From NCBI GenBank assembly GCA_054661495.1, contig BAAFSQ010000007.1:60001-92000 (forward strand): a stretch of DNA of 32,000 bases. The letters are read 5' to 3'. A program made the position numbers and the translations under genes. Numbering within the stretch: position 1 is the stretch's first letter; each line of letters opens with the position of its first letter. The stretch is from Zygophlyctis sp. KS116. Its lineage: Eukaryota > Fungi > Chytridiomycota. A model generated the notes under the pieces. The model made no database searches. It was not told the origin of the DNA and saw nothing but the letters and a program-made list of their open reading frames with translations. Shown here piece by piece: positions 13,570 through 29,556 of the stretch.

Positions 13570-14612
13570 TCTTTAGCTTTATAAGAATCAATAAATTTCT
13601 CTGTAAATTGAGACACACTAGAGAGTATAAAAAATGTAGGAATCCCATCTATAACAGTATAACTCGAGTGAGAAAGAACAGTTTTCAATGACATATTTCT
13701 ACTAACTTTCAAAAGCCTTGATTTCTCCTTTTCTGTACCTCTAGTTTCAAAATAAACTTGTAAATTTGAGACAGTATACTCGTTTTTAACATCCCAGAGA
13801 GGAAAATCCTGAAACATTATTCTTAAATGATCTATAAAACAGGTATTTTCATCAAAACTTGTGATAAAATCTGATTCCTGATATTCTGGATATAAAAATA
13901 AGACTGGCCAAAAAAGATAATCATCTTGAAATTTGACATGATATTCTGAATGAAAAGATGAAAGAATACTTGAACCATGAGATTTTGATTTACTATGCAA
14001 TTTAATTTTTCTAGATATGATTGCATCCATCAACTCCTTGTCTTGAACTTGTTTTTCCTCTTGTTTTAGTTTAATTTGTTGTAATTTCTCTAGTTTTTGA
14101 TCATGTAAATCCCTTAAATCCTTTAATTCCCTTTTAAAATCTGAATTTTCACAATCTACTTGTAGTGCAATTTCACACACTTGAATTGCATCCTCAATTT
14201 TTTCCAATGCAACTAGAGCTTTAATAGATCTATAAAAAGATTTTAGATTTTTATGATCCAGTTTAATACTTTCAGAGCAATCACCCAGTGCTTTACTATA
14301 ATTTTGTAATTTTATCTGAGCAGCAGCTCTGTTTGACAATAGAATAGATTTTAGTTTTGACTCTTTAATGGCTTGAATCCCTTGAGTGTAATAATTCAGT
14401 GCCTCCCGATAGTTTTTATTAGCCATGCATTCATTCCCCTGATTCTTGAAATTGAGAGCGACTTCTTCGTCGGTTCCATCGTACAAGAGACTTTGAAGAG
14501 CCAAAAGTGAAGGATCGTCTGCATTATCTTTGGGTGCTTCCGTCATAAATAGAGGAGTTGAAAAGAATTCATTAATCATTGCATCAGAGTCTTTAGCGGA
14601 TGGTCCAATCAT
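13566..14612 (-). CDS. CNS1: Hsp70/Hsp90 TPR co-chaperone Cns1/TTC4
   Basis: PLFMT, ALQSLLYDG..EVALNFKNQGNE, LLSNRAAA, C-terminal WPVLFLYPEYQESDFI. Confidence 0.92.
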   Translation of the reverse strand: MIGPSAKDSDAMINEFFSTPLFMTEAPKDNADDPSLLALQSLLYDGTDEEVALNFKNQGNECMANKNYREALNYYTQGIQAIKESKLKSILLSNRAAAQIKLQNYSKALGDCSESIKLDHKNLKSFYRSIKALVALEKIEDAIQVCEIALQVDCENSDFKRELKDLRDLHDQKLEKLQQIKLKQEEKQVQDKELMDAIISRKIKLHSKSKSHGSSILSSFHSEYHVKFQDDYLFWPVLFLYPEYQESDFITSFDENTCFIDHLRIMFQDFPLWDVKNEYTVSNLQVYFETRGTEKEKSRLLKVSRNMSLKTVLSHSSYTVIDGIPTFFILSSVSQFTEKFIDSYKAKD

Positions 14613-14814
14613 CTGTAAAATTTGAAGGAAATTTCGATGTCAATCGCTTGTCATTGGGTTGTTAATCATATTATCAGGCATAAGTGTTTCTAGGATTGGA
14701 TGCTGATGACTAGACCCAAATGATGAACTACTAGATCTTATCAATGCTCAGACTATCAAACCACTCGCTCATTATAAAATACAAACGCAAAAACATGAAT
14801 GAAATATATATGAC

Positions 14815-15375
14815 TTATGAAGATAAGATAAAAAAAGAACCGACAGGGATAATGTGAGCTCTAGCAGCAAATCTTGATGAAACTTTGGCGTATGCTTCAT
14901 TTACTGTGTCACTGCCAGATATATGTATATTTTTACTGCCAACATTCATTACAATCAAATCACCTGAACTTTCATCAATGCAGGGACCTCCAGAATCACC
15001 AGGATTAGCTCCAGCAGATCCCAAAATATGCCCAAGATTATTTATACGACAAGAGCAGAAGACTCCATTGGATACGGAGACATATGTCAACCTAATAGAG
15101 GTCTGTTAAAAGTGCCTGCAATGCTTTACTACATAAAGATGATTTAGTAAAGATATCTTTGCTTTTCGTAGCCTTTCTTCTTTTCTGTGGAGCCAAGCGA
15201 GATTTCCTGAAGCGGAATCCAGAAGCTTTACAAAATGAGAAGATGGCTCTTTTTCCTCCAAAGCCTTGAGCAGTCTTTTCTCAGCTTCTGAAACTTTCAA
15301 GGAAGCGTCCTTAACTTCCTCTTGCAGTGCAGCAAGATCTTGTTTAATTTGAATCAATTCTTGACTTTTTGACAT
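14815..15375 (-). CDS. Chimeric effector: coiled-coil header probably spliced to the C-terminal half of a trypsin-like protease (may be a pseudogene)
   Basis: ORFs 15106-15375 and 14815-15090 are in the same frame. The stop between them lies in an intron-like GTAAAG...TTAACAG (15103-15129, 27 nt). GDSGGP is present but the His and Asp segments are absent. Confidence 0.55.
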
Positions 15376-15553
15376 TTTAAGCTCAAGCCATCGACCTGAT
15401 CCCTCTGCTTTTGAGTCAATTCTATGGAAACTCTATTCTCCCTTACAGATCCTGATAAGATTTATCTGCATGTTGGTGCGCCGGATGTTTCCCTTCTACC
15501 GGTGGATCTCCGCCCCAATCAATCCATCGCTCATCCGCATATTCAGGGAAAAT
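15086..15553. repeat. ~468-bp direct repeat, copy 1 (coiled-coil header + 48-bp spacer + aminotransferase 5' fragment + 44-bp linker)
   Basis: Near-identical to 17406-17873 (offset 2320); the 15303-15509 part also matches 18763-18969. Confidence 0.93.
15424..15509 (+). pseudogene. 5' fragment (first ~29 codons) of the aminotransferase gene
   Basis: METLFSLTDPDKIYLHVGAPDVSLLPVDL is identical to the start of 18884-20113, then diverges after GGATCT. Confidence 0.88.
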
Positions 15554-15577
15554 TACGCTGGCAAATATATGTATTAC

Positions 15578-16474
15578 TTAGGGAGAAAAGAATTTTAAAC
15601 CGCCGACAGGGATAATGTGAGCTCTAGAGGCAAATCTTGATGAAGCTTTGTCATATGCCTCACTTACTGTGCCACTGCCAGATATATGTATATTTTTACT
15701 GCCAACATTCATTCCAATCAAATCACCTGAACTTTCATCAATGCAGGGACCTCCAGAATCACCAGGATTAGCTCCAGCAGATCCCAAAATCTGCCCAAGA
15801 TTATTTATACGACAAGAGTAGAAGACTCCATTGGATACGGAGACATATGATTCATTCTGTGATCTAGCAGAAAGACCTAATTGAATGTATTTTCGACCAT
15901 CTGCCGTTCCGCCAATTGGTGGTTCTTCCTCGCACAAATCTACTTCTGATTCTAATAAAATCCAGTTACCAGCAGCACTCATTCCACTGACTTTCACGTT
16001 GTATTCATTGGAAGATTCCATTGAGTGAATTTTCATATAGTCACCAACTTTTAGAGTACTATGAATGTCATGAGCAAAAGTAATCGCTCTTCTCTTTGAA
16101 ATAACAGTGACACATTCCCAGCTATCCGTCCTGAAAACAATCTTGCTGTATTTTTCAACTAGATAATCCCTTCGGCACTGATCAAAAGAACGCTTAGAAT
16201 CTTGACAAATTTCATCTTCTTCGGACTGATAGAATAATCCAATATCTACCATATCTTTTTCTTTCAGCAGTAAATCGTCAATTCTTTCAAGGCCTTTCAG
16301 GTTTGCAACAGCAGATTTACAAAGAGCGTCAAGGCCAACTATTGATTCCGTCCTCTCAATAGCCTCGGACAGTCTTTCTTCTGCTTGTGCAACCTTTGCC
16401 TTTGCATGGTTGATTTTCTTCTCTGATTCTACCAGAGCCGCAAAAACGTCCATTAAATCTTGCTTTTTTAACAT
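15578..16474 (-). CDS. Coiled-coil + trypsin-like serine protease effector (CRN-associated type), copy A, Asp->Asn at the likely catalytic Asp
   Basis: ITFAHD (His), GNWILL (Asp position), GANPGDSGGP (Ser); intronless, no signal peptide; ATG at 16474 in TTGAAAATG context. Confidence 0.8.
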   Translation of the reverse strand: MLKKQDLMDVFAALVESEKKINHAKAKVAQAEERLSEAIERTESIVGLDALCKSAVANLKGLERIDDLLLKEKDMVDIGLFYQSEEDEICQDSKRSFDQCRRDYLVEKYSKIVFRTDSWECVTVISKRRAITFAHDIHSTLKVGDYMKIHSMESSNEYNVKVSGMSAAGNWILLESEVDLCEEEPPIGGTADGRKYIQLGLSARSQNESYVSVSNGVFYSCRINNLGQILGSAGANPGDSGGPCIDESSGDLIGMNVGSKNIHISGSGTVSEAYDKASSRFASRAHIIPVGGLKFFSP

Positions 16475-16567
16475 TTTCAACCTAGCGACTCACCGAAACG
16501 AGAACCTTGGTGCCAACGCAATACCCAAAAACATAACAGTAAATCTCATTCCTATAAACTTTTGAAA

Positions 16568-17228
16568 ATGTCAATAATATCTGGAGGCTCGAAATCTCTC
16601 GCATGCTTAATTGTTGGTGCCACCGGTGGTCTTGGAAAGTGTTTGGTAAAAGAATGTTTAGATCGTGGAATATCAGTCTCTGTGCTGGTTAGAAATAAGG
16701 AGAAATTTATTACTGAATTCTCTAACATTGTTTGGCCAGGAGCAAATATATTTGTCGGTGATGCAGCTTCAGATGCTTCAGTCGTGAAGAAGGCATGTCA
16801 TGGAAAAGATATTGTATTATGTGGAATTGGTGCAGTAGAAGCCATTGCTCGAAATGTTGCAGAACAATCTCAAATTTCGGGTGTAAAGAAACTGATTCAT
16901 GTAGCAGGTGCAACTAATGTCATGGATGTGGATGGTGTAACTCCACTCTGGAAAAATTATGCAGACTCTTGGCCTCCAGCTGAAAGAGTTTTTATTGCCC
17001 ATGGAAAATGTATTGATGCAATTAAAGCAACTGGGATTAATCATGTTGTTTTTTGTCCAGCTCTCATGTCTAGTAGGGAAAAGAAATCATCTCCGGTTGC
17101 AGTGCCTAAAATAAACCGTGAAAGTGGGGGGTTTTGTTTCATATGAAGATGCAGCTCATATAATGGTTGATGCAGCTCAGAAATCTGACTGGGATGGGCA
17201 ACTGATTACTGCTGCGACTGCTGAATAG
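16568..17228 (+). pseudogene. NAD(P)H-binding Rossmann oxidoreductase (atypical SDR / flavin-reductase-like), frameshifted near the C-terminus
   Basis: IVGATGGLGK..V.VLVRN motif. Removing one G from the G6 run at 17126-17131 gives GFVSYEDAAHIMVDAA...TAE* ending at 17228. Confidence 0.75.
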
Positions 17229-17272
17229 AATAATAACCTCGTCGTCGTTGGAATTAATAAAAGTAGTTTTAT

Positions 17273-17695
17273 TCAGGCTCTATGAAAGTTAAGAGAGAGT
17301 ATAGTAGTGCATTTGCTGCTTAGATCTAACAATTCCCGTTTAAATAGCGTAGTTATGTTCTGATTGATCTTGTCGCCCGCCAATGGCGAATCTTCGTCGC
17401 CTGTCGTCAACCTAATAGAGGTCTGTTAAAAGTGCCTGCAATTCTTTACTACATAAAGATGATCTAGTAAAGATATCTTTGCTTTTCGTAGCCTTTCTTC
17501 TTTTCTGTGGAGCCAAGCGAGATTTCCTGAAGCGCAATCCAGTAGCTTTACAAAAGGAGAAGATGGCTCTTTTTCCTCCAAAGCCTGGAGAAGTCTTTTT
17601 TCAGCTTCTGAAGATTTCAAGGAAGCGTCCTTAATTTCCTCTTGCAATGCAGCAAGATCTTGTTTAATTTGAATCAATTCTTGACTTTTTGACAT
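17273..17695 (-). CDS. Stand-alone coiled-coil header protein (homologue of the protease N-terminus), probably two exons
   Basis: 89-aa ORF 17426-17695. A putative intron at 17423-17449 opens 49 further codons (TSIRLTTGDEDS...NFHRA*) ending at TGA 17275-17273, followed by AATAAA. Confidence 0.55.
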
Positions 17696-17873
17696 TTTAA
17701 GCTCAAGCCATCGACCTGATCCCTCTGCTTTTGAGTCAATTCTATGGAAACTCTATTCTACCTTACAGATCCTGAAAAGATTTATCTGCATGTTGGAGCG
17801 CCGGATGCTTCCCTTCTACCGGTGGATCTCCGCCCCAATCAATCCATCGCTCATCCGCATATTCAGGGAAAAT
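17406..17873. repeat. ~468-bp direct repeat, copy 2
   Basis: Matches 15086-15553 with scattered substitutions. Confidence 0.93.
17744..17829 (+). pseudogene. Second 5' fragment of the aminotransferase gene
   Basis: Matches 18884-18969 with 3 substitutions; same truncation point after GGATCT. Confidence 0.88.
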
Positions 17874-17908
17874 AATACAAACGCAAATATAAATGCAATA
17901 TATATGAC

Positions 17909-18835
17909 TTATGAAGATAAGAATATGAAACAGTTGACAGGGATAATGTGAGCTCTAGAGGCAAATCTTGATGAAGCTTTGTCATATGCTTCATTTACTG
18001 TGTCACTGCCAGAAATATGAATATTTTCACTGCCAACATTCATTCCAATCAATTCACCTGAAATTTCATCAATGCAAGGACCTCCAGAATCACCTGGATT
18101 AGCTCCAGCAGATCCCAAAACATGCCCAAATTTGTTTATACAGCTTGAACTAATGACTCCATTGGATACTGAGAAAGGTGATTCATTCTGGGATCTAGCT
18201 GAAAGACCAAATTGAATATAATGCTGACCATATGCTTGTCCCCCAATTTGTGGTTCTTTCTCGCACAAATCTACTTCTGATTCTAATAAAATCCAGTCAC
18301 CAGCAACATTCATTAGACTGACTTTCACATTGTATTCTTTAGGATATTCCATTGAGTAAATTTTCATATAGTCACCAACTTTTAGAGTGCTGTGAGTATC
18401 ATGAGCAAAAGTAATCGCTCTTCTCTTTGAAATAACAGTGACACATTCCCAGCTATCAGTCCTGAGAAGAATCTTTTTACATTCCTGAACAAAAACCTTC
18501 ATTTGGTGCAATTTGTAATATCCTTCAGCCTCTGGTACAATTTTCTGCTCTGATTTAGTGAGTATTTTTTCTTCTTCCTTTCTCTTCAGACTTTCTTCTA
18601 TTCTTGTCAGTTTTTCTTCTTTTCTTGACAGTTTTTCTTCTTTTCTGTGAAGTACTTTGAGATCTGCTGAAGCGCAATCCAGAAGCTTTTCATAAGGAGA
18701 AGATGGCTTATTTTCCAGTAAAGCTGCTGCCAACTGAGACTTCACTAGATTTCTCTCTTTGTAAGCGTCCTTAATTTCCTCTTGCAGTGCAGCAAGATCT
18801 TGTTTAATTTGAATCAATTCTTGACTTTTTGACAT
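17909..18835 (-). CDS. Coiled-coil + trypsin-like serine protease effector (CRN-associated type), copy B, intact triad
   Basis: ITFAHD, GDWILL, GANPGDSGGP; N-terminal heptads; intronless. Confidence 0.85.
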   Translation of the reverse strand: MSKSQELIQIKQDLAALQEEIKDAYKERNLVKSQLAAALLENKPSSPYEKLLDCASADLKVLHRKEEKLSRKEEKLTRIEESLKRKEEEKILTKSEQKIVPEAEGYYKLHQMKVFVQECKKILLRTDSWECVTVISKRRAITFAHDTHSTLKVGDYMKIYSMEYPKEYNVKVSLMNVAGDWILLESEVDLCEKEPQIGGQAYGQHYIQFGLSARSQNESPFSVSNGVISSSCINKFGHVLGSAGANPGDSGGPCIDEISGELIGMNVGSENIHISGSDTVNEAYDKASSRFASRAHIIPVNCFIFLSS

Positions 18836-18969
18836 TTTAAGCTCAAGCCATCGACCTGATCCCTCTGCTTTTGAGTCAATTCTATGGAAACTCTATTCTC
18901 CCTTACAGATCCTGATAAGATTTATCTGCATGTTGGAGCGCCGGATGTTTCCCTTCTACCGGTGGATCT
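18763..18969. repeat. 207-bp third copy of header 5' end + spacer + aminotransferase 5' end (intact locus)
   Basis: Matches 15303-15509 (2 mismatches seen) and 17623-17829 (4 mismatches seen). Confidence 0.92.
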
Positions 18970-20113
18970 TATTAGAAAGACGAATATAATGCAACAAGAT
19001 CTGGTTAGTAGTTTACAGTATGGACCATCACAAGGATCTGAAAGTGTCCGAGAAGAATTATCTCAATTTCTTTCCAGGGAATACAAGTCCCAGGTTGATA
19101 AAGATCATTTACTTGTAACTTCTGGAGCGTCGCAATCATTTTACAACATGATTCCTATTTTTACAAATTCCGAGACTGTCTTCATTATGGAAAATCCTAC
19201 ATATTTCTTGGCTTGGAAGATTTTGAATGATCATGGTATTAAGAATGATTCTATAATTGGGATCTCGAGTGATGGAAATGGATTGGATGTTGATGCTTTA
19301 GAAGCGTATCTTTTGTCTACTTTGGTTCCTTCAAAAGGTTCAGAAGAATCACTTGCCAGTAACTCCAAAAAGAAATTCAGATTTTTACTTTATCTCGTTC
19401 CCACTTTTGGTAATCCAACAGGAGCTTCTTTATCTATGGAAAGAAGGAAAAAATTAATAGACTTGGCAAGAACATATGATATTCTAGTGGTTTGTGATGA
19501 TGTTTACCATTTGATTTACTTTGAAAATCAGATGCCTCCAGATAGATTAGTTTCATTAGACTTAAATTCACTAAAAGAAGAAGAGGGAAACGTAATTTCA
19601 AACTGTTCATTTTCAAAATTATTTTCTCCTGGATTTAGACTTGGATGGATAGAAGCATCTCCTTTTTTGTTAAATCAGTTGAAAAATTCTGGAATTTTGA
19701 ATTCAGGCGGATGTTCAAATCATTTCTCATCGTTTTTGATTAAGCCTATTTTAAAATCAAGTGATTTATCAATTCATTTGCAAGGAATTAGAAAAGAATA
19801 TGAAAGTCGAAGAGATTTATTATTACAGGAATTCAAAAAACTTCCCAGTCAATTCACAGTCTCTAGCCCAAAAGGTGGATTTTTTATTTGGATTACAGAT
19901 ACTACAAAAACTTTAGATTCTAAAATTTTGTTGGAAAGCATTTCTAAAAGTGATGATGCAGATTATAAAGTCACATTCACGCCTGGAAATTCCTTTTCTG
20001 CTAATAATGCCCATGGCCATTGTATGAGAGTCTCTTTTGGAATGTATAGGGGTATCGAATTGATCACTGGAGCACAACGTCTAGTGAATATTTTGACGCA
20101 AACACTGAACTAG
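18884..20113 (+). CDS. Class I/II PLP-dependent aminotransferase (2-aminoadipate/aromatic aminotransferase-like)
   Basis: LQYGPSQG, TSGASQ, ENPTY, VPTFGNPTG, CDDVY, SFSKLFSPGFRLGW (PLP lysine), PKGGFFIW, MRVSF. Confidence 0.92.
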   Translation: METLFSLTDPDKIYLHVGAPDVSLLPVDLIRKTNIMQQDLVSSLQYGPSQGSESVREELSQFLSREYKSQVDKDHLLVTSGASQSFYNMIPIFTNSETVFIMENPTYFLAWKILNDHGIKNDSIIGISSDGNGLDVDALEAYLLSTLVPSKGSEESLASNSKKKFRFLLYLVPTFGNPTGASLSMERRKKLIDLARTYDILVVCDDVYHLIYFENQMPPDRLVSLDLNSLKEEEGNVISNCSFSKLFSPGFRLGWIEASPFLLNQLKNSGILNSGGCSNHFSSFLIKPILKSSDLSIHLQGIRKEYESRRDLLLQEFKKLPSQFTVSSPKGGFFIWITDTTKTLDSKILLESISKSDDADYKVTFTPGNSFSANNAHGHCMRVSFGMYRGIELITGAQRLVNILTQTLN

Positions 20114-20355
20114 CGTAAGTCAAATATTTTCAGCCCAGGAATAGAGTGTCTAGGACAACTTTCATTGTTAATGTCTTTGAGAATTCCTGGAATTTCCTTT
20201 TACGAGTTCAAATCCCAACTCTTTAAAATTGTTGTAAAATACAAATCTCTTGATTTTTTAAATTACTTTGAGTCCTTTGAGTTAAATGATTTAATCAATG
20301 TATTTTAAATACTAACCTTTAGGAACTATTGAATGAAATCTTTGAAAAGGATCTT
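19813..20355. repeat. 543-bp direct repeat, left copy
   Basis: No mismatch found by eye against 21756-22298 (offset 1943). Confidence 0.95.
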
Positions 20356-20481
20356 AGTAGTAGTAGTATAGATAGAGCACCGAATGATACCAGTTTTTTT
20401 GGGCAAGCTAGAATTAGTAAAAGATATTTATATGATATTTTCGTCCAGTATGATTCTTTTGATATTGGCGCAATTGAATGA
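20171..20481 (+). pseudogene. Truncated copy of the 22114-22607 gene fused in frame to foreign sequence
   Basis: Same exon 1, 23-nt intron and ELLNEIFEKDL, then SSSSIDRAPNDTSFFGQARISKRYLYDIFVQYDSFDIGAIE* (TGA 20479-20481). Confidence 0.6.
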
Positions 20482-20530
20482 TATTTTAATCATTGATTTC
20501 TCAATTAAATTTCAAGCAGTAAAATGTTTA

Positions 20531-21433
20531 TTACTTTTGAATCTTTAATTTCTTGCTGTAGATGGGATGCTTTGGACCAAAGCAGTTTCTGAGTTGAGTA
20601 AGGGAATCCTGAATCTTTTCGGCAGTCAAATCTTCCGTAGATGCCCTGGGAGAGACAGATTTGACAGCAGTCATAAACCAAGTGAGCCAGCGAAGAATTT
20701 CAGACAATGAAGAGCTTGAATTGTAAGTTCCGTCCTTTCCAAGTTTAAGGACTTCTTTATCAGAAGCATACACAACACCATCAGTGTCAATGGCAAAGAA
20801 GCGAAAGTCTATCCCATTTGTAAGAGCAGCAAACACAGGAGTCTTTTTTCCAGCAGCCAGACGTTTCTTGAGCAAGCAGCCGGCCTCAGCAAGAGTTTGG
20901 GCGACTGACTTGGCAGGCCATTCATATTTTGCTTCTACAACCAAAAGAAAAGAGTCCATATCATCAACAGATTTGTTTTTAGATGACCCAAACATATAGT
21001 CCACATCTCCAGTGTAGCCGAATCCAGTTCCTTCCCAATCATTCTTAACTTCACAGAATCCCAAAAGTTGCTCGTTTGATTCATTCAATAGAACTTCCGT
21101 AAGGATAGCATCAATCACAATTCTGCAAGCCTTCTCGTTGTCAAGTACCCACACGTTCTTGATTCTGCTGATGTTCTCGCACAAGAAATCGCTCGCAACT
21201 GGAGAAGGAAATGAAGTTGGAATGTGCAAAGAAGGAGCATCAATAGAGACATAGTCAATGTTCAAGTCTAGACCATCAGGTCTAACACAGTCATTGAGAG
21301 TAGCAGAGGAGAATGGTACAAAAGGCTTGGTGGAGCCAATGAGAGTCTTGAGAGCTTTCTTTTGTTTGTCTGTGAGCTGCTCTTTTTCTTCTTCTGTGAG
21401 TTGGTTGAGAGGCTTGTCGAATAGTTTGTTCAT
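20531..21433 (-). CDS. CRN-type restriction-endonuclease-fold (PD-(D/E)XK) effector
   Basis: NEKACRIVIDAIL, GDVDY (D), LVVEAK (ExK), AQTLAE, LTNGIDFRF match the CR-REase pattern; intronless and more GC-rich than the flanks. Confidence 0.8.
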   Translation of the reverse strand: MNKLFDKPLNQLTEEEKEQLTDKQKKALKTLIGSTKPFVPFSSATLNDCVRPDGLDLNIDYVSIDAPSLHIPTSFPSPVASDFLCENISRIKNVWVLDNEKACRIVIDAILTEVLLNESNEQLLGFCEVKNDWEGTGFGYTGDVDYMFGSSKNKSVDDMDSFLLVVEAKYEWPAKSVAQTLAEAGCLLKKRLAAGKKTPVFAALTNGIDFRFFAIDTDGVVYASDKEVLKLGKDGTYNSSSSLSEILRWLTWFMTAVKSVSPRASTEDLTAEKIQDSLTQLRNCFGPKHPIYSKKLKIQK

Positions 21434-21501
21434 TTCAGTTTAGGAAAGGAAGTTAATTTTCTCTTTACCCTTTCGAAAGTTGTATTTTCCACACCAAAAA
21501 A

Positions 21502-21755
21502 ATGATTTATGTTTTACTGCTACAAGAAAATAAGTTCTATGTTGGGATAAATATGGATGGTGGAATGTGAGAGGAGGCAATTGGTGCCAAGTTGATATAC
21601 TTCAGCAAAATCAACCTTCACCAAGCAAATCCAACCGAAACATTCGCAATGGATGTTCTAGATGTGTTAGAGGCTCTCATTCTGTTAAAGACTGTTTTGC
21701 AAGAACCAATGTTACATTTGACTCAGAATCAGATTCTTCTGAATCAGACCAAGGT
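21502..21755 (+). pseudogene. Internally deleted GIY-YIG endonuclease + CCHC zinc-knuckle gene
   Basis: ATG 21502 gives MIYVLLLQENKFYVG, then a frameshift at ~21546 into DKYGWWNVRGGNWC...CSRCVRGSHSVKDC (CX2CX4HX4C). Confidence 0.72.
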
Positions 21756-22298
21756 AGATTTATTATTACAGGAATTCAAAAAACTTCCCAGTCAATTCAC
21801 AGTCTCTAGCCCAAAAGGTGGATTTTTTATTTGGATTACAGATACTACAAAAACTTTAGATTCTAAAATTTTGTTGGAAAGCATTTCTAAAAGTGATGAT
21901 GCAGATTATAAAGTCACATTCACGCCTGGAAATTCCTTTTCTGCTAATAATGCCCATGGCCATTGTATGAGAGTCTCTTTTGGAATGTATAGGGGTATCG
22001 AATTGATCACTGGAGCACAACGTCTAGTGAATATTTTGACGCAAACACTGAACTAGCGTAAGTCAAATATTTTCAGCCCAGGAATAGAGTGTCTAGGACA
22101 ACTTTCATTGTTAATGTCTTTGAGAATTCCTGGAATTTCCTTTTACGAGTTCAAATCCCAACTCTTTAAAATTGTTGTAAAATACAAATCTCTTGATTTT
22201 TTAAATTACTTTGAGTCCTTTGAGTTAAATGATTTAATCAATGTATTTTAAATACTAACCTTTAGGAACTATTGAATGAAATCTTTGAAAAGGATCTT
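21756..22298. repeat. 543-bp direct repeat, right copy (includes the aminotransferase 3' fragment 21756-22056)
   Basis: DLLLQEFKKLPSQF...TQTLN* is identical to the aminotransferase C-terminus. Confidence 0.95.
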
Positions 22299-22607
22299 TA
22301 TTCAGGATCTGTCTCTTACACGTTCCCAAATCTTACGATTGAATTTGAAAGAATTCAAGAGTGTCTAGTTCTGACATTGGACAAATTAAATCAGTTAAAA
22401 AGACCATTGTCTATTGAAATTTATGAAAATAAAAAAGTAAAGCTTTCAGAAGATGAAAAGTCTGATATCATTAAAGGGATTGAAATGATAAATTCAGACT
22501 CTCAAAGAGCTAAAATCGTAATAAATCGTACATTTTTCAAGGAAATCTCATTTATGGAAAGTCTAGTATTATCTCTCAAGGATCTATTCAAAAAATTCAA
22601 AAAATAA
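22114..22607 (+). CDS. Hypothetical protein, two exons (~156 aa)
   Basis: ATG 22114, 43-codon exon, 23-nt intron 22243-22265 (GTATTTTAAATACTAACCTTTAG with canonical TACTAAC), in frame with ORF 22272-22607. Confidence 0.65.
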
Positions 22608-22621
22608 AAACTAGTTTTATT

Positions 22622-23182
22622 TTAATTTGCATGAACTGATGTACAAGGAAGTTTAACAGATTGAGCATGATATGATTGATCATTTGCCAGTAACTTTGAT
22701 TTAAATATTTCAACTTGATTTTCAATGATTCCCATCCAGTTAAAATACATTGATTCAGAGATCATCAAATCAAAATCAAGCCAAGAAAGAATTTTCCTTT
22801 CTTCCTTGTTCAATATATCAAGTGGTATTCCGGATACAGATTCCCATGATAAATTTGAAAAAGTAGAGTCACAAATCGCCTTCATTCCCAGCATTAGAGT
22901 AACAACTAATGTCTTTTTTTCTGATCCCATCAGTAACAATGATTTAGATTTCAACACATGAATGTAATATAATGATAACATGACAACGGAAAACAAAAGG
23001 TTTGAAGGTTTAAGGACTGAATGCACATAGTTCTCCAATCCAATTTTATCATTTGTATGTCCAAATTGCTTCATGATGTAATTTGCAACAAATCGGGAAA
23101 AGTTTTTAGTAAGAATGGATGGCCCGAGAGCAGTTTTGGACAATTGGATCCTAGAGCTCATGGATGACTGATGGTAATTCAT
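22622..23182 (-). CDS. Pcl/Pho80-family cyclin
   Basis: Cyclin-box pattern LSLYYIHVL...LMLGMKAICDSTFSNLSW..VSGI....LNKEERKILSWLDFDL. Confidence 0.8.
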   Translation of the reverse strand: MNYHQSSMSSRIQLSKTALGPSILTKNFSRFVANYIMKQFGHTNDKIGLENYVHSVLKPSNLLFSVVMLSLYYIHVLKSKSLLLMGSEKKTLVVTLMLGMKAICDSTFSNLSWESVSGIPLDILNKEERKILSWLDFDLMISESMYFNWMGIIENQVEIFKSKLLANDQSYHAQSVKLPCTSVHAN

Positions 23183-23464
23183 CCTTTTACAATTCAAAAA
23201 GTTTCAGGACGGCAGGAAAGGACGCCACAAATCATTTTGCAAATCAGAAACGACTGCTTTTACTGATTAAATGGGATTGCTCAATCGGTCCAAGCATAAG
23301 GCAAAAATTTTGTTGGAATTTACCAAAAAACGAAAATGTGTCTAAAGCAGCTTAGGATTCCCAGACTCTAAACGTGTTCCGACCGCCAGACTCTTGATTA
23401 CTACAAAGATTCAAAACGTAAAAGCAATTTCTTAATGATAAACACTACTTAAACCTAAAACGCA

Positions 23465-24460
23465 TTAGTCGTCTGAAAGAATAGCATAAATCATCCCAGC
23501 AATTCTCTTCAATGATTCAACAGTGACAACTTGTTTTACAAAGGTCAACGTATCAAAATCCCTTTCGATTTTATCATTCTGACTTTTCAAGAACATCCAT
23601 TCAATATAATTTGTGACTATACCATAAACAGTTTCTAACCGACCCAAATCAGAAGCCACTTCCATTCCTACTAAATTCTGAGCCATTCCTTGTTCCATAT
23701 CATCCTTCTTGGCTTCGACGATACAAAGTCTTTTATTTTTACGTTTGAGCATGAATTCGAAATGTCCATTGGCTTTGACATTGACACCCTTCAAATCTTC
23801 TTCAATAATTATTTGGATAGAGTCTTCTGGTCCAAATAAGTCAGAAACATAGACGAGAATGGGAGCAATAAAGTGCAAGCGTTGAGTTTTGTTACCAGTA
23901 GTGATTGAACTAAAACGTCTTGTGAGAGTGACAATATAATTGTGCAACAACTCAATAGTTTGTTGGGGAATTTCTTTGACAGTTTGAGAATAGTCATGAA
24001 TAATGTGTCCATATACAGTAGAAATATGACTCCAATTCAATGATGAATATGCTAAACTTTCCTTGAGATCCGTCTGATCACTGTTTTCATCAGCATCTAT
24101 TTCAGCCTGAATAATCAAGGGATTGAGTTCTTCCCATCTATTTCTTCTTTCTTCTGATGGATGTACAGTCTTTGGCTTTTTGACAACTGGGAGAGCATCA
24201 GCATATCTAATGAGCAGTGGGCTATCACCATCATTCTCAAATCCTGATTGCTCAAGTAGTTCGCTTATTTTGAGTCCTGGTCTTAGCTTGTCGCCATCAT
24301 ATCGATGGAGAGTCAACTTGCAGAGGGAAAACGAATCAAGTTCAGGGGCGAATTCCTTCTTGGTCTTTACAATCAAATCAGCCACATTTTTGCATCCAGT
24401 TGGGTCAACTTGGATAGGCTCATCCAAATACCGCACAAACAATGGTTCGAATTCTCTCAT
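23465..24460 (-). CDS. Crinkler (CRN) effector: ubiquitin-like header + PD-(D/E)XK nuclease domain
   Basis: Header VADL..KTKKEFAPELDSF....LTL...PLLI; C-terminus RLHFIAPIL, NGHFEF, CIVEAKKDDMEQGMAQ, VYGIVTNYIEW. ATG at 24460; the longer ORF start overlaps NAR1 on the opposite strand. Confidence 0.85.
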   Translation of the reverse strand: MREFEPLFVRYLDEPIQVDPTGCKNVADLIVKTKKEFAPELDSFSLCKLTLHRYDGDKLRPGLKISELLEQSGFENDGDSPLLIRYADALPVVKKPKTVHPSEERRNRWEELNPLIIQAEIDADENSDQTDLKESLAYSSLNWSHISTVYGHIIHDYSQTVKEIPQQTIELLHNYIVTLTRRFSSITTGNKTQRLHFIAPILVYVSDLFGPEDSIQIIIEEDLKGVNVKANGHFEFMLKRKNKRLCIVEAKKDDMEQGMAQNLVGMEVASDLGRLETVYGIVTNYIEWMFLKSQNDKIERDFDTLTFVKQVVTVESLKRIAGMIYAILSDD

Positions 24461-24524
24461 TTCCCAAGAGTAGTGCCACAAGCGTTTCGACCAAGGGGGC
24501 TGTAGCAACAAGGGTATTGGATAA

Positions 24525-25857
24525 ATGTTTAGCAATGCTGCAGTTAAAGCCGATCTTAATGATTTTATAACTCCCTCCCAAGACTGCATAATCCCAAAAA
24601 AGGTATCCAAATACTAGTAATCTGTAGGATGTTCAAATATCATTAAACGATTGCTTAGCTTGTTCGGGATGTATTACAACTGCAGAATCTGTTTTAATTA
24701 ATGAACAAAATATCCAAGAGTTTTATAAGTTGGATCAAGGGAAATTGATTGTCTCTGTCTCTGAGCAAGCAAGAGCTTCAGTTGGAGCTAAATACTCTAT
24801 GAATAACTCTGAAATTCAAAGAAAGTTGACATGGTTCTTTAAAAAACATTTGAAATGTCAAAGCGTCATTGATCTTTCTCTTGCAAGAGATGCAGTTCTA
24901 GTTGAAACAGCTACTGAATTCCTAACTAGGTTTAGGTCTGAAAAGTCACCCCTACTCAATAGTTCTTGTCCTGGATGGATTTGTTATGCAGAAAAAACGC
25001 ATCCAGCTTTGATTCCAAACATTTCTAAAGTTAAGTCACCCCAACAACTCATGGGCACATTGGTCAAAAGGCAAGGCGATGTTACTCATGTGACAATCAT
25101 GCCGTGCTATGACAAGAAGTTGGAGGCATCTCGAGATCAGTTTCAAGTAAATGGTGTTAGAGATGTGGATCTAGTATTAACTACAACTGAATTAGAAGAG
25201 TTGGTTGCTAAAGAAGGATTTCCAGGATTTTTGGGTTTAAAAGAAGATGATTTGGAAGGATTTTCTAAAGTGCATCCTTCTAATCCAAATATATTACTAG
25301 GTACTGATGGATCATCATCTGGAGGTTATTTATCATATATATTCATTATCGCTGCAAAAACATTATTTAATATTTCTATTTCTCACTCAGATATACTAAA
25401 TGGAAGTAATGGAGTTGAAATTATTCAAAAGTCTAGAAAGAATTCATCAGATTTTATTCAAATTAATCTAGTGGATCCTTCAAATCCGAATCTAAAGTTG
25501 TTAAGATTTGCAGCGGCATATGGATTTAAGAATATTCAAAATGTTGTACGGAAACTAAAAGGCTCAGAACAAAATTGGGATTATGTTGAAATCATGGCAT
25601 GTCCTTCTGGATGTATCAATGGTGGTGGACAGTTAAGAAATGAATCTTTTACTGGTAAAGACTGGATTTTAGCCTCTGAATCTGCCTATACCAGCACTCC
25701 CTCATTAGGAGTGACACCAACAGAATCAATCAAGCATAATTCCCTGTTTCAGATATTGCTGGCCTCTATTCCTGAACAGGAACGATCATTAATATTTTAC
25801 ACTACTTACAAAGCTGTCGAGAAAAAAATTAGCAATGCTTTAGGAGTCAAGTGGTAA
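24525..25857 (+). CDS. NAR1: Cytosolic Fe-S assembly factor Nar1/NARFL
   Basis: DLNDFITPSQDCI, intron 24603-24627 (25 nt), ISLNDCLACSGCITTAE, SSCPGWICYAEK, MPCYDKKLEA, EIMACPSGCINGGGQ, terminal KW. Confidence 0.94.
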
Positions 25858-25905: not shown

Positions 25906-27076
25906 ATGTGGGAATTAGTTTTTCTAGTAATGATTAGCCCGTTTTTGCAGTTCTTTTTAATCAAACTGAACAGTCCAAGAATTGTTTATTCCATTGTGCC
26001 GTTTTCATTTTGTTTCTTTGGGCCATTGTATTTTAGATACCCAACTACCCCAACATATGCAGCGGTAGTTTCCATTCTCTTATTCAGCTACCTCAGGATA
26101 TGTGATATTTCACTCTTACCAACGGCAATTGTTAGATCGTGGACGGTTTATGATTACTCTGAATATTTCATGACTTATTATACCAAAGAACAACGTAAAA
26201 AATTGGGAAAGAAATGTTATTCTAAATACTCTACTCCATTCTCTAAAAGAGATGCATCATATTATGGTAAAGTAGCATGGAAACTATTAGTACAATATAT
26301 TGCGCTTAATGTTTTGGTATGGTACACCAATGCATATCCGCCTCAGGATCAACCATTTTACACGATTGTATGGCCTTATAACTTGAGAATGATGGTTGAT
26401 AACTTTATTTTTGGATTGATTTGCTGTCTTTTGTTAAGCATCAGTAACTTTTTTATTCTTAATTACTAGATTATAATCTCGTCTTTCAACCACTAACTCA
26501 CTTTTTCCAAATACCTTTTGAACCAATTATGAATTCACCATTTTTATCTACTTCAATCAGAGATTTTTGGTCTAATAGATGGAATATGTCTATAAAATTA
26601 AATTTGCACAGAGTTGGGTTTGTACCAGTCGTGGAAGGCTTTAGATGGATATCTGGTATCAAGAATGTAGAAAAGTCTCCTTCATGGCATTCAATATTAG
26701 GAGCAATGAGTAAGGCCAATATATCTGATAGAACCTAGGTGCATTTGTTTTGTCTGGATTGGTACATGAATGGATGATGGTATGTCTTACCGAAGCGCCA
26801 AGTGCATATGAACAATTTATATTTTTCACAGTCCATGGACTCATCACGGTATGCCAAGTTCTAGTTGAAAAATCTGCAAAGAAGATTTTTGGATGGAATC
26901 CCGTTTCCAAGGTTCCGTCAGTTATTTGTATACCTACAACATGGATTATATTTTTGATGACATCTTCATTTTTTGCAGGACCGTGGATAAGAGGAGATAT
27001 TTTAAACAATGCACGTCTCTTAACGATTGACGAAGTGATTTTCACTCTTGAAAAATTAATTAAAGCTAGATCTTGA
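25906..27076 (+). CDS. Wax-synthase-type MBOAT acyltransferase, paralogue 1
   Basis: MNSPFLSTSIRDFWSNRWN, SGLVHE, FFTVHG; introns 26444-26469 and 26710-26738. Confidence 0.88.
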
Positions 27077-27227
27077 TCGTTTATTGAAAAAATGCCGTAT
27101 TAGAGCTTGATTTAAAAGGACCAATTGAACTTCATAATAGTATCTCTGGGCGATTGTAAATAAGTCCGAATCTTTCAATGCAGATCATCAGTTTACAAGA
27201 TTGTGAGTAGGAGTGCAATTTCTACTG

Positions 27228-28364
27228 ATGATAGAACTGGGGATACTAGTTCTCATCACCCCACTGTTACAATATGTGCTGATAAAGCTTCAAACTAGCA
27301 AAATAATCTATGGAGGAATCCCCTTTTGTTTATGTTTTTTTGGGCCATTCTATTACCGATATGGAGCAAGCTTTAGTTTTGCAACTTATTGCTGTTTTTT
27401 ATTGTTCAACTACCTCAGATTTCTTGACATATCTCTTCTGCCAAAGAATGATGTAAGATCATGGTCGATCTATGAATATTTTGAATATTTTCTATCCTAT
27501 TATACAAAGGCGCAACGGAAACAAATGGGAGAAGCAAATTTTGCACACGCAGTCCCATATTCGAAGCGCACTGCAGAATATTATGGCAAGGTGGCCTGGT
27601 CATTAATTGTTCAGTATTTCATTTTTAGTGGTTTGATCCGGTTTGAGCAATATTATCAACCCAATCGTGATCTACATTCAAACAGATTTCTTTGGCCAAC
27701 CGAATTTAAAAACATGGTTGACAATTTGATTTTTGGGTTAATTTTATGCCTGATCTTGAATATTGGTATAATTATTTCTTATTCTAAATACTAGACTATA
27801 ATCTCATCTTTCAACCACTAACTCACTTTTTACAAGTACCTTTTGAACCAATTATGAATTCACCATTTTTATCTACTTCAATCAGAGATTTTTGGTCTAA
27901 TCGATGGAATATGTCTGTAAAAATAAATTTGCATAGAATAGGATTTCTACCAGTCGTGGAAGGCTGCAGATGGATATCTGGAATCAAGCAAGGAGAAAAG
28001 GGTCCATACTGGCATGGGATTTTTGGAGCTATGGGTAGTTTTTTTTGTTTATGAAATAGGCGCTTTTTTTGTATCAGGATTAATTCATGAATGGGTTATT
28101 GCTTGTGCTTCTACTAGGCCCACAACTCTTGAACAATTGAATTTTTTCTTGATCCATGGATTAATAACGGTTTTGCAGGTTATTTTTGAAAAGATTATAA
28201 AAAAGGTATTGGGTCGGAACCCATTATCAAAGCTTCCAAACATCTTCTGTATCGCCATAACATGGGTATTGTTCTTGATGACTACATCATTCTTTGTCAA
28301 CCCATGGGTAAGGGAAGATATAATAAATCGAATCCGGATCCCTGCGATTCAGGAATTATTCTAA
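27228..28364 (+). CDS. Wax-synthase-type MBOAT acyltransferase, paralogue 2
   Basis: Same motifs; introns 27766-27794 and 28035-28059. Confidence 0.88.
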
Positions 28365-28449
28365 ATTACTATATAAAAGACTATTTTAAAGTATTTGCAA
28401 AGTCCGAATCTTTCAATGCTCAGTGTGAGTAGGCGTACAATTTCTACTG

Positions 28450-29556
28450 ATGATTGAACTGGGGATACTATTTCTCACCGCCCCATTGTTACAATATGTG
28501 CTGATCAAGCTTCAAAACAGCAAAATAATCTATGGAGGAATCCCCTTTTGTTTATGTTTTTTTGGGCCATTCTATTACGTTCAGACTGAAAATCCAAATT
28601 ATGTAAAATGGGTCGGTCTATTATTAGTGATTTACCTTCGAATGGCTGATATTTCGTTTTTGCCATTGACAGAAGTGCAATCATGGACTATTTCTGATTA
28701 TTATGGATATATATTTTCTTATCATACGACGGCGCAACGGGAACAAATGGAAAAGTCGAATTTCTCAAAGAACAGTGTCCCCTATGCTAAACTTGACTCA
28801 GATTACTATAAACAATTATCATGGAATTTACTGATTCAATATTCTTTACTAAATTTGTTTATGTGGTATGATCACCATTACCCTTCGAATCGCCATCTTA
28901 CGGTTAACCAGTTCCTAATGCCTATTGACTTTGAAGCCGTTTTTGATACGTTGCTATTTACAGCGAATGTGTTTTTAGTACTGAATATTAGTAAGATTTA
29001 CCAATTAATTTTAGATAATTACCTCACATTTATACCAATATCCCATTTCTTTCGGATCCCTTTTAAACCAAATATGGATTCCCCTTGGTTATCCACCTCT
29101 TTGAGAGATTTTTGGTCTCATCGATGGAATTTACCAATGAAATTAAATCTTTATAGAGTAGGATACTTGCCTACAGTTCAAGGATGTAGAGTAATTTCTG
29201 GAATCAATGAATTAGAAAAGACTCCAAAATCATTCAAAATGACTGGGATACTATTTTCATTTTTAGTCTCTGGAATAGTTCATGAATGGATGATGGCGTG
29301 TACCTCTCAAAAATCCACTTTTGAACAATTTAATTTCTTTCTTATTCATGGAATTTTAGCTTGTGGCGAACCTCTGGTCGATAGTTTTAGAGACTATAAA
29401 AACTCAAAGAATACGGTTCGTGTACTCATGACTTGGATCATATTTTTGATGACTAGCCCATTATTTATTAATCCGTGGAAACGAGAAGGGATCTTGGCAA
29501 GAATCAAACCGCCATTGATTATTGATCTTTTCATAAGAGGCTCATTGATTAGGTGA
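28450..29556 (+). CDS. Wax-synthase-type MBOAT acyltransferase, paralogue 3
   Basis: PWLSTSLRDFWSHRWN, SGIVHE; probable in-frame 24-nt intron at 28991-29014. Confidence 0.88.
   Translation: MIELGILFLTAPLLQYVLIKLQNSKIIYGGIPFCLCFFGPFYYVQTENPNYVKWVGLLLVIYLRMADISFLPLTEVQSWTISDYYGYIFSYHTTAQREQMEKSNFSKNSVPYAKLDSDYYKQLSWNLLIQYSLLNLFMWYDHHYPSNRHLTVNQFLMPIDFEAVFDTLLFTANVFLVLNISKIYQLILDNYLTFIPISHFFRIPFKPNMDSPWLSTSLRDFWSHRWNLPMKLNLYRVGYLPTVQGCRVISGINELEKTPKSFKMTGILFSFLVSGIVHEWMMACTSQKSTFEQFNFFLIHGILACGEPLVDSFRDYKNSKNTVRVLMTWIIFLMTSPLFINPWKREGILARIKPPLIIDLFIRGSLIR

Follow-up and report, generated by a model that had tools for sequence, protein, structure and literature searches.

The insertion locus and its empty site

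This analysis concerns a short gene-carrying insertion in the genome of an uncultured freshwater chytrid (Zygophlyctis sp. KS116), which lies in a 32,000-nucleotide stretch of contig BAAFSQ010000007.1 (positions 60,001 to 92,000), hereafter called the window. Where a host aminotransferase gene is followed by a hypothetical gene, a 1,400-bp insert (20356-21755) separates two direct repeats of host sequence. The features of the locus are as follows.

18884-20113, plus strand: host aminotransferase gene, intact (409 aa; PF00155, E 3e-31)
19813-20355, no strand: 543 bp of duplicated target, left copy (the 3' end of the aminotransferase gene, the 57-bp spacer and the 5' stub of the next gene), present once in the empty-site strain L130
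20356-20401, minus strand: fixed terminus, made of an A-rich run, a 6-bp hairpin with three G-U pairs (20376-20391) and an (ACT)x4 tail (20356-20367), supported by pattern and covariance-model matches and by other organisms
20402-20530, minus strand: 3' untranslated region of the nuclease gene, its DNA alignable to copies in other organisms
20531-21433, minus strand: intact, intronless gene for a 300-aa nuclease of PD-(D/E)XK fold (D145, E167-A-K169, Q179, E183); cargo, without a Crinkler header
21502-21755, plus strand: divergent remnant of a GIY-YIG-like/zinc-knuckle gene (zf-CCHC_5, E 2.5e-4), with an internal deletion and a frameshift near 21545, cut at the variable end of the insert
21756-22298, no strand: 543 bp of duplicated target, right copy, 100% identical to the left one, with junction 21755/21756 present in public runs X1-X3
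22114-22607, plus strand: host hypothetical gene, intact on the right (predicted 23-nt intron 22243-22265, 156 aa; the same 111-aa exon open reading frame (ORF) in L130)

A preliminary description of this DNA, made from the letters alone, had noted two identical repeats around the 1,400-bp segment. Self-comparison confirmed them: the copies at 19813-20355 and 21756-22298 are 100% identical, measure exactly 543 bp and can be extended by 0 bases on either side. The 543-mer occurs at only 2 places in the whole 12.7-Mb assembly, both at this locus, and a comparable downstream repeat was found at none of 184 control points. The ends of the target and of the insert have no homology to each other. 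The aminotransferase is about 42-46% identical to proteins of Gorgonomyces, Terramyces and Boothiomyces, while exact-protein look-ups gave no match for any protein of the window. As first described, both host genes are whole, the aminotransferase on the left and the next gene on the right of the insert. However, this sparing need not be a designed property, since any target duplication longer than the gene parts cut off spares the genes automatically and the survivors have also been filtered by selection.

In a related strain (L130, a scaffold of another sample), whose protein is 98% and DNA about 95% identical to the window, the locus carries one repeat copy and both native junctions, and the insert is absent. 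The empty allele that the preliminary description had proposed to look for thus exists, which shows that the 1,400-bp segment was inserted and that the repeats are a genuine target-site duplication (TSD). The junctions were also searched for in public run assemblies, using contigs and a query (18975-21790) with one repeat copy; no single contig spans the whole locus. The right junction, 21755/21756, is found in X1-X3, of which X1 may be the source sample, and the left flank ends there at 19813, as it should; X4, from a strain about 1.7% diverged, bridges the left junction, its shorter side being 31 nt. The event had been called very recent, which is borne out in part: it is absent from a strain about 5% diverged in DNA, but its left junction is already present in the strain about 1.7% diverged. 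An assembly artefact, the doubt raised at the outset, could be suspected from the complete identity of the copies and from the want of a spanning public contig. With both junctions seen in independent runs, the site empty in another strain and the layout repeated elsewhere with diverged copies, it is hardly credible.

The shared terminus, its cargo and its duplications

The left end of the insert is not specific to this locus. Read on the minus strand, it consists of an A-rich run, GGTATCATTCGGTGCT (the 6-bp hairpin with three G-U pairs), a short spacer and an (ACT)n end, about 35 nt in all, and the first ~40 bases of the insert match many places in the genome. A 20-mer from this terminus has 34 genome matches, versus 0 for a control pattern, and its covariance model 39 matches at E<0.001 in the assembly (about 40 loci), with 2, 3 or 4 tail units among copies. 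The hairpin pairs on the sense strand only, through G-U, with 95% of cells paired. Beyond the tail the sequences are mutually unrelated and biased to ACRNN: over 34 ends, A is found at -5 in 21, C at -4 in 23 (p 8e-11) and a purine at -3 in 31, although at one locus two of the ACRNN bases are not derived from the target. The same tally of flanks ruled out GGATCT as a target consensus. The preliminary description had called the segment unique and gave it no defined terminus; with its terminal motif at about 40 loci, three restriction endonuclease (REase) paralogs and a fixed end that recurs across species, it has to be described as a mobile-element insertion. The element entered an intact locus with duplication of 543 bp; its left end is precise and common to about 40 loci, and the other one falls at an arbitrary point inside a gene.

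The nuclease, its 3' untranslated region and the terminus occur together in three metagenome organisms, in Globomyces and in the frog pathogen Batrachochytrium dendrobatidis JEL423. Judged from sequence, the presence of the same terminus in this genome and in other chytrids points to a gene-carrying transposon family. An Rfam search of the element returned no family and no hammerhead, the terminus motif was found in no prokaryotic genome, and in viral contigs the full pattern was absent, the 20-mer having one chance match inside a viral gene.

Long duplications recur at other loci and in other species. A 113-bp duplication (94%) abuts the tail on contig C168, one of 135 bp does so at L057 from another metagenome, and one of 63 bp in B. 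dendrobatidis JEL423 (L059). On C129 a 3,969-bp duplication (100%) surrounds a 1.43-kb motif-capped insert, with 2 extra nt; the whole arrangement spans 14293-23660 (L083, L074, L020, L084), and the perfect repeat includes whole host genes. The shortest, of 6 bp, surrounds a double-ended inverted copy on C244, and far-end inverted segments are found both there and in B. dendrobatidis. In the latter (L059, 1142-7853), at least three tandem units of about 2 kb, each with nuclease and terminus, are followed by the same 63 bp, and an inverted gene fragment is present. At L057 (1960-1975) the variable junction holds about 15 extra bases, including the telomere-like CTAACCCTAA. The statement that TSDs ordinarily measure a few to tens of bp stands in so far as long ones are rare, but long ones have already been described.

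The tandem units in B. dendrobatidis bear on another route, in which a circle of insert plus 543 bp was integrated by homologous recombination, or is extrachromosomal and was unrolled by the assembler. A short-read graph cannot separate the tandem layout from an empty site plus a circle, and in X1-X3 the repeat-holding contig has about 1x rather than 1.3x depth, contig depth being an unreliable measure. Nevertheless, the diverged repeat pairs (89%, 94%, 95% and 98%) are chromosomal and a circle would still need two novel junctions first, so that we consider this route very unlikely.

The preliminary description had proposed to test whether other CRN/REase genes lie between direct repeats of 100-600 bp; some REase genes do. 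The two closest paralogs of the nuclease are flanked by repeats of about 390 bp (89%, C199) and 140 bp (95%, C71) with the same polarity as in the window, whereas the copies on C15, in Rozella, in Amoeboaphelidium and at L123 and L129 have no surrounding duplication. In the C199 pair (L002, 1051-1442 versus 2494-2881) the first ~180 bp are near-identical and the rest about 85% identical, a pattern that suggests gene conversion or a two-step origin.

Within the window, a 303-bp repeat (87%; 14778-15080 and 17874-18174) flanks a 2.8-kb segment missing from strain L130, which contains an extra trypsin-like gene, an NAD(P)-binding gene and 5' fragments of the aminotransferase. It represents another long duplication, older than the first and with repeats nested in one another; no terminus motif was seen in it. 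The window also holds a Crinkler-like (CRN-like) gene (23465-24610), shortened and partly inverted in L130, and three diverged tandem MBOAT-like genes (26080-29352; 68-74% DNA identity), which L130 has too.

The intact gene of the insert belongs to a stand-alone family of about 300 aa, with 58-85% identity among its members in chytrids, Rozella and an aphelid, in whose alignment D145 is invariant and K169 nearly so. Its structure model (predicted local distance difference test, pLDDT, 86.6) matches the nuclease domains of type IIG and type I restriction enzymes (Z 12.0 for BpuSI, 10.7 for DrdV and 8.4 for HsdR) and also two mitoribosomal chains whose fold is of this class (Z 15.7 and 15.1); the nearest named family in the Atlas is HSDR_N, and a PDB sequence search gave no match. 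The modelled protein has the PD-(D/E)XK restriction-endonuclease fold with its D...(D/E)xK core, in agreement with the preliminary description. The further label of a CRN-type effector could not be upheld: the ORF and its homologs, which stand alone at about 300 aa, lack the Crinkler N-terminal header or leader; Pfam gave nothing, yet it also missed the CRN-like neighbour. The putative nuclease is probably a passenger, and a role for it in cutting targets is conjectural.

The GIY-YIG/zinc-knuckle remnant was likewise correctly recognised, as indicated by the zf-CCHC_5 match and by relatives on C560 and at L123. Two copies of the GIY-YIG-like gene are present in total, the one on C560 being a longer paralog, and one contig runs past 21755 with different letters. 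At L123 the same gene stands head to head with the nuclease, and the remnant in the window is thus where an older two-gene unit was cut off.

Elsewhere the terminus caps other cargo, named here by resemblance: Crinkler-like genes, aspartyl and trypsin-like proteases, HNH, NHL repeats and ATPases. These genes lie next to the terminus in both orientations, the sense ones reading as single ORFs and most antisense ones likewise. The nuclease is 73-78% identical to its copies in Batrachochytrium, Boothiomyces and Globomyces, but for the adjoining aminotransferase the nearest named chytrids reach 42-45%; the contrast hints at transfer between species. A 54%-identical homolog of the nuclease (P0103) is annotated in the assembly of the liverwort Calypogeia fissa, by contamination or transfer.

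Possible routes of insertion

We take the insert, with high probability, for a non-autonomous mobile unit with a single fixed end that entered by staggered joining. As to the chemistry, target-primed reverse transcription is the route we favour, tentatively and at somewhat short of even chances. A transcript ending in the hairpin and (ACT)n tail would be bound in trans by the protein of a non-long-terminal-repeat (non-LTR) or Penelope-type retroelement. The plus strand of the target would be nicked after 20355, and the nick would prime copying from the tail through the nuclease gene until copying halted at 21755. The new strand would then join the other target strand 543 bp upstream, by a second nick or a template switch, and fill-in would write the target twice. 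Any gene adjoining the terminus could be carried in this way, in either orientation.

An RNA template is favoured by the variable number of tail units, the G-U hairpin, the far-end inversions and the one telomere-like addition. Truncation of the far end and the intronless nuclease are further traits of a retroelement, and the unit has what defines a non-LTR retroposon, namely a fixed 3' end with a tail, a truncated 5' end and a TSD of variable length. Polarity cannot separate the two chemistries, since the product of reverse transcription is the same as that of HUH strand transfer.

Several observations weigh against the reading of a reverse-transcribed, terminus-driven unit. Exactly two tail units are found at 31 of the 34 ends, as precise as a DNA nick site. 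The hairpin, plausible but not proven, shows no two-sided covariation and is no better than shuffles. None of the about 11 3' ends read in long interspersed nuclear elements (LINEs) shares the terminus (they are telomeric CCTAA, (AAGT)n or poly(A) ends), and no reverse transcriptase (RT) match lies on the element side of any motif, among the 150 of 184 candidates that were scored, many RT contigs being cut. About 20 further motif loci have no abutting duplication within the 1.5-10 kb examined, many of them being cut by contig ends, and two motif flanks have no second copy anywhere in the assembly. Finally, the paralogs on C199 and C71 have long duplications but lack the terminus.

Several candidate partners were rejected. 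The ~1,000-aa LINEs of the RTE clade were discarded for their telomeric or (AAGT)n ends, RNase-H LINEs because they have poly(A) ends wherever read, and four weak RT matches because they were Gypsy or the same LINE families. As for a Penelope partner, searches with Pfam and Rfam profiles gave no Penelope RT, no GIY-YIG (PF01541) and no hammerhead match. Many of the ~1,000-aa LINEs (L062-L068) are inserted at CCTAA telomere-like repeats, beside subtelomeric tandem repeats. A separate family of LINE-like ORFs of 1,300-1,700 aa (L096, L098, L100, L102, L114, L115) has RNase-H-like regions and poly(A) ends.

One-ended rolling-circle transfer of the Helitron2 or IS91 kind is possible, although less likely than reverse transcription. 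A HUH transposase would nick at the terminus, attach the 5' end where the target is nicked after 20355, and peel off single-stranded DNA without a terminator; the free 3' end would then prime on the target 543 bp upstream, which produces the duplication. The precise end, the target bias and the cargo in both orientations all suit this route. On C643 a PIF1 helicase ORF, which runs on into a HUH Rep domain on C1068, is followed by the motif about 440 nt later, and C244 copies parts of this C643/C1068 RepHel composite. Chlamydomonas has one-ended Helitron2 families whose 3' end is intact, whose 5' end is truncated and whose TSDs measure 7-19 bp and as much as 443 bp (PMC3627910). The RepHel was at first accepted as the driver but was downgraded once its own terminus appeared, a hairpin ending in GCCTCTGCGCG about 230 nt before the motif. 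C643, C1013 and C806 share this terminus with an unrelated RepHel found in another run, and of these only C643 shows the motif, so that the RepHel may itself be cargo or nested. Moreover, there is no TT target (T at -1 in 7 of 34) and no shared second terminus was seen. No inverted repeats were found in the insert ends at a threshold of 25 nt, but one-ended copies could be without them, and the Rep profile PF23343 gave no match. The RepHel family (L069, L093 on C643 and C1068, L087, L088, L122) has a conserved hairpin, one relative having a downstream protease-like ORF, and a homolog carries DUF6570, a marker of Helitron2/Helentron (HLE2).

Break repair might dispense with a transposase altogether: a broken target end would invade the donor, copy it and return upstream, with the motif hitchhiking. 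It would suit the paralogs on C199 and C71 and the 303-bp duplication at 14778/17874, all without the motif, the spread of duplication lengths from 6 bp to 4 kb and the failure to find a partner enzyme. It leaves unaccounted for, however, a base-exact end at about 40 loci with unrelated flanks, the target bias and the cross-species terminus, and there is no homology between target and insert ends. We therefore regard it as improbable here. Repair may be the source of copies without the terminus, while the shared terminus argues against plain repair for the capped ones.

Going back to the one-ended unit, its terminus offers a concrete, searchable cis signal for the multiplication of nuclease and Crinkler-like genes in gene-dense chytrid genomes, in which gene expansions have been tied to repeats by proximity only (PMC9926174). 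Since each insertion also duplicates as much as 4 kb of host DNA, whole genes included, host genes are both spared and copied by the element. For one-ended HUH elements the origin of long TSDs is described as unknown (PMC10288648); the number of copies, the empty site and the terminus shared across species make the question of RT versus HUH testable. A broader conjecture, which we rate as rather unlikely, is that zoosporic fungi share an undescribed autonomous element that is neither a known LINE clade nor a Helitron. Its terminus of about 35 nt alone would mobilise adjacent genes with duplications up to kilobases and move between chytrid species, as a main engine of Crinkler-like expansion and host gene duplication.

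Comparison with known systems

The nuclease shares a REase-fold domain with the Crinklers, among which effectors with REase domains were reportedly described by Zhang et al. in 2016, and many other motif-capped cargoes resemble CRN modules. The chytrid nuclease differs in being stand-alone, without an N-terminal header or leader.

Among rolling-circle elements, Helitron1 (HLE1) has a 5' TC, a 3' hairpin with CTRR, insertion in AT and no TSD (PMC11417382). The chytrid unit departs from it in its CTACT end, its ACRNN target and its long TSD. HLE2 elements insert in TT and have short asymmetric inverted repeats at both ends. Neither this target nor these repeats were found here, and a RepHel adjoins the motif on C643 only, with its own different terminus. 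The one-ended Helitron2 CRe-1/2/3 (PMC3627910) and Replitron-1 (PMC10288648) insert after TTTT or RG and share their ends with a known RepHel or Rep. The chytrid element resembles them in having one intact and one variable end, variable TSDs (theirs to 443 bp), a target bias and a passenger nuclease gene; it differs in its ACRNN bias, in a local RepHel with a different end and in its highly varied cargo.

Penelope-like elements (PLEs) combine a PLE-type RT with a GIY-YIG endonuclease and have a pseudo-LTR and often a hammerhead. Penelope termini of about 200 bp mobilise host genes in trans, with reported TSDs of 8-10 bp (PMC3846280). Movement of genes by a short terminal cis sequence, inverted double-ended insertions and telomere-capped truncations are common to both systems, whereas the TSDs of Penelope are short and its ~200-bp termini contrast with the ~35-nt terminus of the chytrid unit. 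In the ToxB unit of Pyrenophora, for which the authors propose a Helitron-like unit, the junction is related to LINE sequence (bioRxiv 10.1101/2025.11.13.688278). There, too, multi-kb host duplications are parted by a short piece of a mobile element, but at a single locus and with no cargo family.

Long duplications are also made by LINEs. The C. elegans element Rte-1 is said to make a duplication of about 200 bp. Dualen-4b_cRei of Chlamydomonas and R9 of rotifers resemble our insert in being truncated, in having a fixed 3' end and in being flanked by duplications of hundreds of bases. The median TSD is 900 bp for Dualen LINEs and 126 bp for R9 (PMC9977147). Both are, however, the elements themselves, with RT and endonuclease, whereas the chytrid terminus carries unrelated genes with a duplication of up to 3,969 bp. 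In the literature covered, which was partial and did not include Repbase, no report was found of this terminus, of such breadth of cargo or of kilobase duplications in chytrids. One-ended insertion with long TSDs is known from algae and rotifers, and a chytrid terminus with so broad a cargo appears to be new.

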